Shown: positions 55,675 to 63,566 of the stretch, one piece after another | How the letters are laid out: each line of letters starts with the position of its first letter | How positions within the stretch are numbered: position 1 is the stretch's first letter | Assembly: GCA_038496445.1 (NCBI GenBank) | Contig: JALMLS010000165.1 | Location: forward strand, 1 to 64,000 | Origin: Trichosphaerium sp. ATCC 40318 | Taxonomy: Eukaryota > Protista > Tubulinea | Length of the DNA: 64,000 nt | Direction of reading: 5' to 3' | Program-made: the position numbers and the translations under genes | The notes under the pieces: generated by a model | Told to the model about the DNA's origin: nothing | What the model saw: the letters and a program-made list of their open reading frames with translations, nothing else | Database searches by the model: none

Positions 55675-56800
55675 TCAAATTAAAAAATAGTCTGGAATCT
55701 CATCTACATGCACACCTCTTTCTTCGAGAGTAGCAATGAATTCACGTGAGAAGCTTCCTTGTAATAGACGGATATTATGCAAGCTAGCTAATGATTCAAT
55801 TCCTTTTTCTGTGATATTTGGACAATCAACCAGGTTAATCTCTTTGACACCTGAAAGATGACTGAGCCACTTATCTGTTACGTTTACATTACGAGACAGA
55901 TTGATTGAATGCACACCAGTAAGACTTTTCATACACGATACAGTGATTCCTTTACAACCTGACAGAGCTATTTTCTTCACACCTTTCAATCTTGAAATAC
56001 CTTCATCTGTGATGAGATCACATTCACTCAATCTTATGGTATGTGCACCTGCGAGGGCTGAAATTCCTTCATCTGTGATGAGTGGGCACGCACATAGATC
56101 TATGTTATGTACACCAGCAAGCGCTGAAATACCTTCGTCTGTGATGCATTGACGTCCACACAGATTTATGGTGTGTACACCAGCGAGTGCTGAAACACCT
56201 TTGTCCGTTACATTGGCAAGCCTTAAATCTATGGTGTGTACACCCCCCAATTTAGAAATACCTTCATCTGTCACTGATCTGTTGTGGAACAAACTTATGG
56301 TATGAACGCCCGCTGCAGCTGAAACAACTCCATCTGCCATACTGTCTCCCAGACAGATATATTTGAGGTGCTTGGTAAGTGGTAGTAAACCCACTTCTGT
56401 TACTGCTGTACATCTAGACAATGACAAGCGACGTATACCACAAATATACTTCAATCCTACATCTGTGAGGTTGCCGTTGTCACGAATTCCGAGCGAGTCA
56501 ACACCCGCAAGAAGTGCGACTTCAAAATCTGTTCCCCAACCTTGCATCTCAATATGGGTGTTTTTTAGAAGAGGACTTCCACAAAGACGAGCACAACATG
56601 CACTAGATCGAAGTACGATAAAATCGTATCCAACGTGATGGTGAATAACGTTTGATAAACGGTTACAGGTGAGATACTTGAAATCTATCAGAGCGGTCCA
56701 CAAACTCTAGCATATAAGCGATTATCTCTGTTGGTACTTCTAATAGGTTGGGTTCATCTATCACCTTGTTTGGTCCTGCATATGCTGTTTTAGAACGCAT
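55675..56800 (-). pseudogene. Intronless F-box plus Cys-containing LRR gene with a frameshift inside the F-box (pseudogene or assembly error)
   Basis: ATG 56800 gives ...LLEVPTEIIAYMLEFVDRSDRFQVS then a stop. The frame shifts at ~56672 to LTCNRLSNV, followed by ~10 LRRs (AGVHTIxLxxCxxITDEGIS). Confidence 0.8.
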
Positions 56801-58870: not shown

Positions 58871-61053
58871 CTACAAGAGTAGAAACAAGAGAGCTACGAT
58901 TGCTGACACTGCAGCTTTATCATATGTAAAACCACTTGTTGTTTGCGAACTTGGTGCTACTGGGGCCTGAGTAGTAGGATCTGTTGGCGCTACTGTGGTT
59001 GGGGGAATTGGAGCTGTTGGTGTAGCTGTTGTCGGAGGCACAGAGGGAGCTATTGTTGTTGGTGGTGTTGGTCCAATTGGAGCAGTTGGTTCTGCTGTAG
59101 TTGGAGATATAGTCGGTGGTGGAGTCGGCGGGAAGTCAAGTAAAGCGTTTCTAGCACGAGAATGTCAATAACCATCGAGTTGACAATTAAAAAAAACGCA
59201 CTTTTCCCACTGTTCTAGCATCCTTGAGTATACTCTGAAATCATCGATACAGGTACCATTACCACTCAATCCTGTAGTAGTTTCTATAGCAAATAAGTTG
59301 TAACCAAATATAAAAAGAAACACGTGACTATGTTTGTCGAACTTTAAAAGCTTTCTAGGTATTGTTTAAAACACGTACCTCCAATAATAGGTCTTCTAGA
59401 TTGAGCATTACCAAGTACAGGTGGAGTAACTTCAAATACTTTTGCGACTTCATTATTGACAGACAAAGTAATTTGATTATTAGTGTTAATTATTTCAAGC
59501 ATTATCAGATTCCATGTCCTTGCAGGGGTGTTATCTATCCAAGCAGTACCACTACAGCTACTAGTCACACACATAGTCAGCCTGGTACCGTTAATACCGG
59601 AGTAAAGCTCCAATCCAACACTGTTAGGATTGTCACGAAAGGTGAGTATTCTTTGACGTTGGTTTTTTTCTCTGCTTAGCCAAAAAGCGATTGTTAGCGG
59701 TGCTTTTTTAATAGCAGCGAAGACATCTTCATCAGCTTTGATAGATTTCGTTAGTCTATAAGAACACACCATAACCCTTTCAGGTATATTGTAGCGTACT
59801 TATTTCTAGTTCCTTTGCTCCGTCCTCGAAACAAAGTGCACTGTTTGGGTTTCCAAATCGGTCAGCTTCAAACTCTGGATCAGTACCAGCGTCTGTATAC
59901 ATTCCTCCAATCTCGCCTATACCATCAAATGTAATATGAGCCTCTATAATAATAACTTATTAACCCCTTATCAAGTACATTGTAAAAACGGCTATATAAA
60001 AGAAAGTCTTCTTACCAGGTTCAAGTCCTTGATTAAAGGGTGCAAAAGGAGGATAAGTAAAGTCAAGTTGTGCCGATCTAGAGCGTATTAGTAACGCAAC
60101 TAAACAAAAGAGTACCTTTCTGTCGAATCAAGTGCACTATCCCAAAATTTCATGTCATCTATCGCGTAGCCATTTCCACTTCGGATTGCTATCCAAAAAT
60201 AAGAGAATGAGACGTACAACAAAAAAAACAAACACAACACATAAATAATATGAAAAATTTTTTTCAGCAAAGTCACGTGATAGTGTGTTTGAAAACAGGG
60301 TCAAATTTGAATGCACTGGAAGATGACATACCATCTCCACCAATAATAGGTAAAAAATTAGACGTTGCAGATAATACGGGTCCTCCAGTAACTACAAAAT
60401 CTGTTGCAAGAACATTGTTGACATAGAACTCGATGTTTGTGTTTGCAGATTGAACGACAAACGTCAATAAAAACCATGTTCCTGCAGGTAAATTATCCTG
60501 CCATGCTCTGCCACTGCAAGCGTTTGCTGAACACATTGTAATTCCATCTCCATTCGTCCCAACGTAAGCTTCAAACCCACCATTTTGTGGTGTATCGCGA
60601 GCATCGAATATAGGCTGTGTACGTCTGTACTTACGGCTCATCCAGAAGGAAAGAGTCATAGGAGCGCTTTTAAATACGCTTTGTATTGTTGTATTACCTA
60701 AAAACGCACGTAAACGCGACGATCAACGTAGAGGAGTAGTTTTTAAAGCGTGTAGCGCGTTTTTTGGTAAAATATCCTTTCTGTACTGCGTTACGTACTA
60801 ATGCGAACTGGCTTTGATTCCTCTCCGAAGTATATAGCGCTGTTGGCATTTCCAAAGCGATCCGCAACAAATATTGGATCTTCCGTTCCTGCCGTTGTTA
60901 ACAAATCTCCTTCAAAGTCACCATCAAACTTCAAGTGTGCGATTGGATCTATTTAACCGTCAATTAACTCTGTTTGTAGTTTTCTTTGATCCCCAACCTG
61001 TACCTTGGGCTGTAGCAATAGCAAGCAGTACAAAACATACCAGTAAACTGGAT
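58871..61053 (-). CDS. Secreted/GPI-type protein with two LamG (concanavalin-like) domains and a Pro/Thr stalk
   Basis: Signal peptide; two domains each with DRFGN[A/P]NSA, T[L/I][S/A]FW and IDD[M/F][K/R]; PPTPPPTISPTT stalk; hydrophobic C-terminus. Confidence 0.85.
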
Positions 61054-61683: not shown

Positions 61684-62023
61684 AGAATTTACTTGTTACA
61701 TTTTACTACGCATGCAAAGTATTAAAATAGAGGTTTGGGCAAAATGTAATGAGACCCAAAATATCACGTGAACTTTTGATTTTAGTGTTTAAGACTACTT
61801 GTAATCAACAGAGTAGCTAGAGTCAAGCATGCCATTAGAGAAGATAATGTGTTGCATCCTAAAATCCTTTATCTTTTTTGTTATACCAGGATACTACCGC
61901 TACTGACGCTCCCCACATAACTGGGTCACTTCGAAAAGAATGAAGCAAGTTGTTTTGATTATGTATAGCCATTTTGAGCTAGACAAACCATTTACAACCT
62001 TCATTAAACTTATACGAGTAACA

Positions 62024-63566
62024 TCATTTCTTGCCAAGCATCTTAGAGAAAAATTTGGATATCTTGGATTTACTTTTTGTAGTACTATTTTAGGGTTAGG
62101 AATGTAACACGTGTGAAACCGAAATAATTTAAAAATAGCAAAAACAACCAAAATATTGTAAATAGACAATACCTTACAGGTGGCAACTTTAACACCATTT
62201 GTTGATAGTGTTCAACGATAAGTTCAAAAAGCTGTTCAATATTTTGGCCTGTTTTACAACTCACAGAAATAAAACGTGCTCCCCATGACTTTGCACGTTC
62301 TACACCTTCAGATTCGTGTACTTGTGTTTCATAATCTAGATCACACTTATTCGCAACCTACAAAACAAAAGTGACCAAACAGTCCAGAACCATCACGAAA
62401 ATCGCAGCAAAAGAGCAGTACTAATATCATTGGGAATACTTCGATATCCTTAACACGCATGATCTGGTCTCTAAACGGTACAAGTTCATCAAAGCTTGAT
62501 CTACTGCTACTAGAGTAAACAAGAACAAATATCTCTTCCCTGTGCATATATTGATCACGCATTGCACTGTACCTGATAAAAAGTAAATTCACAAAGACAA
62601 AACAAAATGGTCTGATATGTATACGCACTCTTCTTGGCCAGCGGTATCTAGTACACTAAATTTAGCATAAAAATTTCCCTTTTTGATGGACATTATCGTT
62701 TCGTCTTCTAAATTCAGTGTGAGTGTATATCATGAAGTACAATGCAACAAGTCATGTTACTGAAGATTCACTTACCTATTGTTGGATCGTATTCATCCAG
62801 GAACCGACCAGTTATGTATCTTGTAATTATAGCAGTCTATTATCAAGAGTTTGTTGAGTTAACGCAAAAACACGTGTTTTATCACGTGACAGAAAAAAAA
62901 ACCTTGACATACACATCCTACGCCTCCACCTCCACAGAAACAACACTTTATCTTAAAAATCATGTTGTATTAGGCAGTGTTCAAGTTAACTTTAAAGGTG
63001 TTTAAACACGTACTTCAAAGTCAGACGCTGTGATTTTTCTTACGGATGTCTTTGACATTTCCAACTTTGGTAAATGTTTTGATACTTCGTTATCGTACGA
63101 ACTGGGAAGACGTTAACGTTTTATAGTAGCAAAACGTTTAAAAGAGATCACCTGGAAACTGAGAGCATGACCACCTACAAGAAAGCTGTTAACTTCTAGA
63201 GTAGTTTTGAAAAAAATAAAATTCGTAGCTCCTAGAGGGCTTTGTTTTGATAGGTTGCAATGGATCCAGTTAGATTAGTACCTTATGTGTCCAGTCGTAG
63301 ATAAAAGCGCTCTTGATGTTATCACCTGTTGAAGTTTGTCTGTAAAATGTATTTTCAACGCTTGGAAATGTACCTTTAGGTTCTGATCCGAAGTGTTGGG
63401 CGTAAAAACGTTGCCACAAAAAGTTATCAGATGTAAATGATCTAAAAGACTTAGAAGTAGCGCCAAGAGCTACTAAATGTTCCACATCGAGGTTATAGAT
63501 GATTAACACAAGTATTTCACGCGGAAACGATTCAAAAGGTAATAAATCTGTTTCCTTCTTCTCCAT
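62024..63566 (-). CDS. F-box-Ras fusion protein with non-canonical P-loop and no CaaX
   Basis: F-box exon (FESFPREILVLIIYNLD...TSKSF...LWQRFY) splices in frame through two linker exons to IKCCFCGGGGVGC|TAIITRY..EYDPTI..DTAGQEEYSAMRDQYM..NKCDL..SCK; ends KSKISKFFSKMLGKK*. Confidence 0.82.

Follow-up and report, generated by a model that had tools for sequence, protein, structure and literature searches.

The window analysed here—the whole 64,000-nucleotide stretch from Trichosphaerium sp. ATCC 40318, corresponding to contig C132:1-64000 in a eukaryotic assembly of 70 Mb in 642 contigs—has a GC content of 36.6% and short GT-AG introns, and carries on its minus strand a gene in which an F-box is joined to a Ras GTPase domain. 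This F-box-Ras gene (63566-62024) is intact and comprises 10 exons that together encode 307 amino acids in 924 nt; from the N-terminus, its product consists of an F-box, a linker of ~50 residues, a GTPase domain of the Ras subfamily, and an amphipathic, polybasic tail that lacks a lipidation box. Translation of the three minus-strand frames showed that the ATG at 63566 begins a 95-codon open stretch bearing the F-box, with short stretches that spell out Ras further downstream. The copy in the window contains no stops and no frameshifts, and its splice sites are all canonical, every one of the nine introns being GT-AG and 48-107 nt long. That this fused gene is real, and that its Ras domain has lost the lysine of the P-loop, we regard as very nearly certain.

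The structure of the gene is documented by transcript sequence. A word search with exon 1 returned nothing, as the length window of that tool would lead one to expect. When exon 1 was searched exhaustively with HMMER against 1.84 billion representatives, a single strong match emerged, P0001 (307 aa, E = 4e-37), with query residues 1-95 aligning to residues 1-79 of P0001 and the 16 missing residues being those encoded by an intron. P0001 reads as an F-box, followed by ...WTHK-VVMLSVSS-SYDNEV..., IKCCFCGGGGVGCTAIITRY... and a C-terminal ...KFFSKMLGKK, and its uninterrupted open reading frame (ORF) of 924 nt lies on two contigs of ~1.85 kb, L018 and L019 (Joint Genome Institute sample 3300016894). 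Because all nine introns are absent from these contigs, they derive from RNA. Aligned to the window with BLAST, L018 falls into ten blocks whose ends coincide with the modelled exon borders, and the ten window exons agree with the transcript ORF at 917 of 924 positions without a single indel (exons 2, 3, 5, 6, 8, 9, and 10 are identical). At 99.2% DNA identity to the window exons, P0001 was used as a proxy for the full-length product, the exons being otherwise searched singly.

The initial annotation of this locus had linked the F-box to the Ras domain by an in-frame splice model. The transcript ORF spans both parts, so that F-box and Ras indeed belong to one gene with one ORF rather than to separate transcripts, but the exon 1 of that model contained a 48-nt intron (63373-63326), which was evidently taken as coding because it is open and in frame in the window copy. 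The earlier link was also incomplete in that it lacked a required micro-exon of 23 nt (63174-63152), which leads into exon 4 and thereby joins the F-box part and the Ras part in a single frame. The donor near 62912, flagged at the time as the junction most in need of checking, is confirmed by the transcript (after GVGC, 62913|62912), as are all other junctions, and the identity of exon 9 with the transcript fixes its donor at 62172, giving the basic tail that had been quoted. Three other splice forms were considered. A last exon reached from donor 62177 (...PP-YYKK-stop) and an unspliced read-through with a hydrophobic tail are both excluded by the transcript together with the conserved tail peptide. 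A direct splice from exon 2 to exon 5, which would be in frame, is absent from both transcript contigs, and the conserved peptide of exon 4 speaks against it; skipping of the micro-exon and exon 4 in this way is unlikely to yield the main form, though it may yield a minor isoform. Coordinates and contents of all exons are collected in Table 1.

Table 1. Features of the F-box-Ras gene in the window, with agreement between each exon and the transcript
Feature	Position	Strand	Length	Content	Transcript	Conservation
Exon 1	63374..63566	-	193 nt	start codon 63566-63564	L018 666-858, 4 mismatches	
F-box domain	residues 13-55, ~63530-63402	-				core conserved in 15 copies
Intron 1	63326..63373	-	48 nt	GT-AG, phase 1; open and in frame here	without the intron	
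Exon 2	63282..63325	-	44 nt	encodes (G)DNIKSAFIYDWTHK	100% identity	peptide conserved in 16 copies
Exon 3, micro-exon	63152..63174	-	23 nt	VVMLSVS plus a split Ser codon	100% identity	
Exon 4, linker	63014..63101	-	88 nt	in-frame ATG 63058-63056	2 mismatches	
Exon 5	62913..62951	-	39 nt	encodes IKCCFCGGGGVGC; strand beta-1 and P-loop	100% identity	
Exon 5 codon TGT	62915-62913	-		Cys at the Ras Lys16 position		
Exon 6	62776..62836	-	61 nt	encodes TAIITRYITGRFLDEYDPTI; helix 1, switch I core	100% identity	conserved in family
Exon 7	62629..62707	-	79 nt	strands beta-2 and beta-3, G3 motif DTAGQE	1 mismatch	
Exon 8	62422..62572	-	151 nt	switch II (EYSAMRDQYM), strand beta-4, helix 3	100% identity	
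Exon 9	62173..62357	-	185 nt	G4 NKCD (62351-62340), helix 4, G5 SCK (62261-62253), helix 5	100% identity	
Exon 10	62024..62084	-	61 nt	basic amphipathic tail TTKSKSKISKFFSKMLGKK; no CaaX; TGA 62026-62024	100% identity	

Profile searches recognize both domains. Pfam reports F-box-like (PF12937; E = 3.6e-10; 39.9 bits, cut-off 24.3) and F-box (PF00646; E = 1.1e-5; 25.6 bits, cut-off 20.5) on exon 1, and Ras above the cut-off on two single exons (62571-62422, E = 2.6e-6; 62357-62178, E = 1.5e-9); exon 6, which has Thr at the Ser17 position and retains the equivalent of Thr35, gives a weak Ras match when searched alone. On P0001, the Ras profile (PF00071) is matched from position 1 to 160 of 162 (E = 7.4e-41) and both F-box families are found again (F-box-like, E = 3e-8). 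The nearest solved structures by sequence are R-Ras2, K-, H-, and N-Ras, and Rap2A (E ~1e-38), and the best 60 of 788 sequence matches in the PDB are all ordinary Ras-type GTPases. Likewise, the Ras domain shares ~50% identity with ordinary amoebal and fungal Ras proteins, and a word search with the whole of P0001 gave ordinary Ras proteins only among the 120 matches listed.

Within this near-canonical domain, the absence of the P-loop lysine stands out. The sequence motifs first reported for the locus—GGGGVGC continuing with T in the next exon, EYDPTI, the G3 segment DTAGQEEYSAMRDQYM, and NKCD—are all present, and the other G motifs are retained (YDPTIED, DTAGQE, and NKCD, with SCK replacing SAK). 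The P-loop, in place of GxxxxGK[S/T], reads GGGGVGC-T in both genome and transcript, where the codons are TGT|ACT, and HMMER aligns its cysteine opposite the lysine of R-Ras2 (GGGGVGC vs GGGGVGK); the proposed lysine-to-cysteine change is thus upheld. No combination of a GT donor and an AG acceptor near 62913 gives AAA or AAG, and hence no splice that restores GK[S/T] was found there. A metal site formed by a cysteine cluster (CC-F-C plus the P-loop Cys) was considered and dropped, only the first beta-1 Cys being conserved across copies. At the opposite end of the protein, a CaaX box for prenylation is typical of the Ras family, if not universal; here the ORF terminates in ...SKMLGKK-stop in both genome and transcript, and the basic tail KISKFFSKMLGKK, followed directly by the stop codon and lacking a CaaX, is real and conserved among paralogs. 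Rit and Rin similarly have no lipidation box and a basic C-terminal segment as their likely anchor, an analogy that extends to the tail only.

We searched the genome with exon 1 and exon 9 separately and compared the copies exon by exon. At no fewer than 15 places, an F-box exon precedes the last large Ras exon by ~1.2 kb in the same orientation, with paired copies on contigs C404, C201, C120 (three), C160 (two), C239, C134, C190, C162, C187, C27, C281, C146, and C383. Two of these contigs, C404 (1-6000) and C383 (1-1600), are 97-99% identical to, and collinear with, window coordinates 58635-64244 over several kilobases, C404 carrying an insertion of ~385 bp at window position 62010, just beyond the stop codon. 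Judged by this similarity, they are probably haplotigs or very recent duplicates of the window locus, in which case copy counts in the assembly are inflated. Setting C404 and C383 aside leaves roughly a dozen distinct loci, some of them decayed: L012 (C187) has an in-frame stop in the F-box, L015 (C146) has a stop in exon 8, the Ras part of L014 (C281) is disrupted by unrelated sequence, and L017 (C383:11500-14000) is reduced to exon 10 and part of exon 9. The gene therefore belongs to a multigene family, and one that is lineage-restricted.

Loss of the P-loop lysine extends across this family. The P-loop exon is readable in 14 copies, and not one of them encodes the lysine—11 have Cys, and L002, L011, and L007 have Gly, Val, and Leu, respectively—and a loss seen in 14 of 14 copies is due neither to chance nor to sequencing error. 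The residue that follows is Thr or Ser in every readable copy, and P-loop positions 11-13 are free to vary (GGGG, GDGA, GDGP, GLRG, GLIA, GETG). In L007 (C134), the P-loop exon (GEGVGL) is apparently followed by GCAAGT, likely the start of a GC-AG intron; all other copies have GT at this point. The parts that connect the two domains are shared as well. Wherever the linker of a diverged copy can be traced, the micro-exon is 23 nt long with AG/GT borders, and its peptides (VVMLSVS, MVMLQVY, LELLKIN, VEVLKIN, AVLLKVR, LLLLKID, MTLLQVN, and LTFLKIV) follow a pattern of hydrophobic-LL-K/Q-I/V. Homologs of intron 1 are 42-48 nt long and shift the frame or contain stops in most paralogs. Twelve copies share the tail pattern K.KSKI.K.F.K.LGKK, and DTAGQE is retained in 9 of 15, G3 being degraded in L004, L007, L008, L009, L010, and L012.

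Ratios of nonsynonymous to synonymous change (dN/dS), computed by the Nei-Gojobori method on in-frame exon parts, are 0.20 between the window copy and L003 and 0.38 between the window copy and L011, and such values for deep pairs indicate that the family has been maintained by selection. Constraint is unevenly spread over the protein. In a gap-free alignment of the window clade (the window copy, L004, L005, and L002), NKxD shows no change at all, and the corresponding regional ratio of proportions of changed sites (pN/pS) is 0.06 for strand beta-6 plus SCK (17 synonymous vs 4 nonsynonymous changes) and 0.14 for helix 1, rising to 0.66 for switch II, 1.15 for helix 3, and 1.27 for the helix-4 loop; in the clade of L003, L006, and L009, pN/pS for the exon 8 region is unreliable, L009 being out of register there. 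The F-box core is the most conserved section of the N-terminal half (pN 0.019). Over three phylogenetically independent, gap-free pairs, nonsynonymous and synonymous changes stand at 57.6:10.4 in switch II, helix 3, and the helix-4 loop vs 43.3:34.7 in the remaining Ras domain (Fisher p ~8e-5, an optimistic value given that the fast regions were picked post hoc).

These comparisons bear on the possibility that the locus holds two separate genes, one for a small F-box protein and another for a Ras starting at ATG 63058, or else a non-functional pseudogene. The unspliced reading of exons 1-2, which stops after 98 aa, the in-frame ATG of exon 4, and the visible decay of several paralogs would all suit such an arrangement, yet the transcript ORF is unbroken across all ten exons, and the window copy has intact frames and canonical splice sites, with G4, G5, and the F-box under purifying selection. 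Moreover, the ATG is not conserved: L007 and L011 have Val or Ser in place of its Met, and in L003, L006, and L009 exon 4 is entirely without Met, leaving the Ras part of these three copies without a start of its own, whereas the peptide upstream of the ATG (SYGENV.K.IPKL) is conserved. We consider two genes or a pseudogene scarcely credible.

The architecture is less novel than initially assumed, as F-box-GTPase fusions are known in Naegleria and in trypanosomes. GTPases of the Ras superfamily in Naegleria carry the F-box more often than any other additional domain (Rab-like, Rho, Ran, and G-alpha; Herman et al. 2021, PMC8296547, Additional file 4), and the fusions form expanded clades with birth-and-death evolution, for which the authors proposed GTPase-dependent ubiquitination (PMC8296547). 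These proteins resemble the present ones in having an N-terminal F-box upstream of a Ras-superfamily GTPase and in forming expanded lineage-specific families that include disrupted copies (PMC8296547); they differ in that an example sequence (n = 1) keeps GK[ST], whereas the present family belongs to the Ras subfamily and lacks the P-loop lysine. TbFRP of Euglenozoa, a 63.8-kDa protein with one gene per genome, combines FYVE, F-box, and Ras-like GTPase domains (PMC3593210), the F-box lying immediately upstream of the GTPase in one polypeptide, and its link to ubiquitin-dependent turnover is likewise proposed only (PMC3593210). Unlike the present multigene family, which has no FYVE and probably binds membranes through its C-terminal polybasic tail, TbFRP carries an N-terminal FYVE for membranes containing phosphatidylinositol 3-phosphate.

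From sequence comparison, the fusion appears to have originated independently of both the Naegleria and the TbFRP types, with no sign of shared ancestry. No relative of exon 1 other than P0001 was found at E <1e-5 in the exhaustive HMMER search, and a GTPase domain was absent from the 10 that were scanned of the other 11 F-box matches to this exon. A word search of 5.8 billion clusters with the N-terminal 115 residues of P0001 also returned P0001 only. It is because the F-box region has no relatives beyond P0001, and because the other F-box matches have no GTPase, that we favor an independent origin. What is distinctive about the present family, then, is that it involves the Ras subfamily proper, that Lys16 is lost family-wide while G2-G5 are kept, and that it apparently arose on its own.

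More distant parallels exist in animals and elsewhere. The GTPase domain of animal FBXO4 (Fbx4) has lost its G motifs, unlike that of the present protein, which keeps G2-G5 and is about half identical to true Ras. The F-box of FBXO4 docks the SCF (Skp1-cullin-F-box) ubiquitin ligase and its atypical small-GTPase domain is the substrate receptor for TRF1 (PMC7086354), a likeness in principle only—a GTPase fold used as a substrate-binding module—that was drawn by description and not by sequence. In a protein language-model search, the nearest clusters were those of Rab40 (a Ras domain with a SOCS box; the top neighbour) and FBXO4, with scores of 0.79-0.81 overall and 0.79-0.80 for FBXO4, neighbours that we treat as leads only. 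Rab40 keeps a normal P-loop. Together with RhoBTB (BTB, cullin-3) and TRIM23 (RING plus ARF), Rab40 (SOCS box, cullin-5) resembles the present family as a fusion of a GTPase with a ubiquitin-ligase adaptor; these proteins and the ARF fusions differ from it in adaptor box, cullin, GTPase subfamily, and domain order. ARF-family proteins with BTB or F-box domains have been described, and small GTPases have repeatedly been recruited to ubiquitin circuits (bioRxiv 10.1101/2020.10.31.363457).

On balance, we lean, with modest confidence, toward reading the product as an SCF substrate receptor at the membrane whose nucleotide-poor Ras domain serves as bait. Under this proposal, the F-box would dock Skp1 and hence a cullin-1 ligase, the basic tail would tether the protein to acidic membranes, and the Ras domain, as a weak nucleotide binder, would be the substrate-binding module that offers Ras-binding proteins for ubiquitination, with duplication and the fast change of switch II, helix 3, and the helix-4 loop retuning the binding of each copy. 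Nucleotide-free Ras binds exchange factors tightly, which is the mode of action of dominant-negative Ras mutants. Exchange factors, with their preference for nucleotide-free Ras, would accordingly lead the list of candidate substrates, though that they are the actual targets seems to us rather doubtful. A nucleotide-impaired Ras domain would fit, by analogy, the behaviour of HRAS K16N, which has lowered nucleotide affinity and adopts the apo state in cells (PMC8936000). Among the dominant-negative Ras forms (K16N, S17N, G15A, and D119N), loss of Lys16 reduces nucleotide affinity and shifts the protein toward the apo form in the same way (PMC8936000); these are laboratory mutants of normal Ras, whereas the change seen here is natural, family-wide, joined to an F-box, and to Cys rather than Asn. 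Skp1 genes were found in the genome, as were at least 166 exon matches to the RasGEF domain. The decoy-degrader suggested by the initial annotation, which would trap RasGEFs, effectors, or toxins for SCF, is a plausible hypothesis, and it is compatible with the presence of Skp1 and RasGEFs, with the fast evolution of switch II and helix 3, and with the precedent of FBXO4.

Several observations weigh against the reading of the product as a fused, bait-carrying receptor. The 7 mismatches in 924 positions between the transcript and the window copy mean that the transcript could stem from an allele, from a copy nearly identical to this one, or from a different strain, and the first 665 nt of L018 belong to another gene, which encodes a Rab-like GTPase whose GVGKT loop is normal, so that L018 may be a read-through or bicistronic product or an assembly chimera; neither caveat touches the junctions within the F-box-Ras ORF. 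In the AlphaFold2 model of P0001 (built from a mixed alignment), only the Ras domain is confident (predicted local distance difference test, pLDDT, of 73-96 vs <50 for residues 1-111), and the packing of the F-box, linker, and Ras parts can thus not be read from it. Several family copies are decayed, and in recent pairs dN/dS of the Ras domain is 0.36-1.0 and always above that of the F-box; part of the variability may therefore reflect relaxed constraint rather than adaptive retuning. The fast regions were also chosen post hoc. Finally, NKxD, SCK, DTAGQE, and the equivalents of Thr35 and Gln61 are kept, although a pseudo-GTPase that served only to bind proteins would not be expected to keep them, and the strong retention of the guanine-binding motifs is what fits a pure bait least well. 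That NKxD and SCK are so strongly conserved suggests that nucleotide binding is partly retained, so that a nucleotide-dependent switch, or at least some guanine-nucleotide binding, would persist.

As to the Rab-like sequence itself, its ORF (L018:2-607, 201 aa) ends 58 nt upstream of the F-box-Ras ORF and maps to C379:11377-12420 on the minus strand, beside a degraded F-box copy. The C201 copy of the family has similar Rab-like genes upstream.

The retained motifs would also suit a self-limiting Ras switch, in which the F-box shortens the life of its own GTPase or couples nucleotide state to SCF binding, making the protein a signalling Ras with fast turnover. Conservation of G2-G5 makes a working nucleotide pocket plausible, and for TbFRP, whose processing and turnover are rapid, the same function of the F-box has been put forward (PMC3593210). 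However, with the lysine lost family-wide and P-loop positions 11-13 free to vary, a normal GTP cycle is less likely, and the fast surface helices suit changing partners more than self-turnover; we judge this switch unlikely. Skp1-F-box complexes can also work without a cullin, an example being membrane recycling in yeast, where some F-box proteins act in this way. If the present F-box bound Skp1 in this manner, the protein could be a membrane scaffold or a competitive dominant-negative inhibitor of Ras signalling that involves no degradation, given that the polybasic tail and the apo-like state expected of the Ras domain (PMC8936000) would alone sequester exchange factors. The low pN of the F-box core shows that the F-box is used, yet it does not distinguish SCF from non-SCF roles, and we hold a function without SCF to be decidedly unlikely.

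The evolutionary pattern, for its part, could be that of an immune-type decoy, a Ras mimic that catches Ras-modifying toxins or effectors of bacteria or viruses infecting the amoeba and passes them to the proteasome: birth-and-death evolution, high dN/dS among recent copies, and the concentration of change on exposed surfaces would all be in keeping with such a role. Retuning toward endogenous partners fits the same pattern, however, and the neighbours of the gene in the window (a leucine-rich repeat protein and lectin-like ORFs) offer no clear link, making an immune-type decoy very improbable in our view.

The SCF receptor that we favor might be taken one step further, with the family acting as natural dominant-negative Ras degraders—baits held in the apo state, tuned through switch II and helix 3, sited at the membrane, and locking particular exchange factors, or Ras-targeting effectors of intracellular microbes, for ubiquitination by SCF. 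We offer this extension as a speculative and rather unlikely one; if true, it would represent an undescribed layer of Ras-pathway control through the targeted destruction of activators. Fusions of GTPases with ubiquitin adaptors have arisen repeatedly (RhoBTB, Rab40, TRIM23, FBXO4, and the F-box fusions of protists). The present family is an unusually clean case, with the motifs of a textbook Ras bar the single lysine whose removal is known to leave the nucleotide pocket empty, set beside an F-box and a membrane tail in many diverging copies. Should the domain serve as bait for Ras regulators, a dominant-negative mutation would have been turned into a targeting device, and the family would offer those who engineer Ras-pathway degraders a model from nature; should the domain still bind nucleotide without the lysine, this would matter in itself for P-loop biochemistry.

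Some further features of the window were noted in passing. No sequence in it appeared human, viral, or toxin-like. The palindrome CACGTG occurs 48 times vs 8.7 expected, a count reached in 0 of 100 shuffles, and six of its occurrences lie in or beside the gene (61765, 62108, 62871, 62883, 63599, and 63786). Intron 5 holds two of these six, intron 9 another, and a further one precedes the ATG by 33 nt. Introns of the paralogs contain the palindrome as well, and across this genome it may serve as a common regulatory element. Two related minus-strand ORFs (59344-59772 and 60273-60659) follow closely downstream of the gene; one matches Laminin_G_3 (concanavalin-A-like lectin/glucanase; E = 3e-9), and the pair probably represents exons of a single lectin-like gene or of two such genes. 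Farther along the same strand, an open frame of 342 aa at 55675-56703 encodes leucine-rich repeats of the RNI type (LRR_6, E = 2.6e-15).

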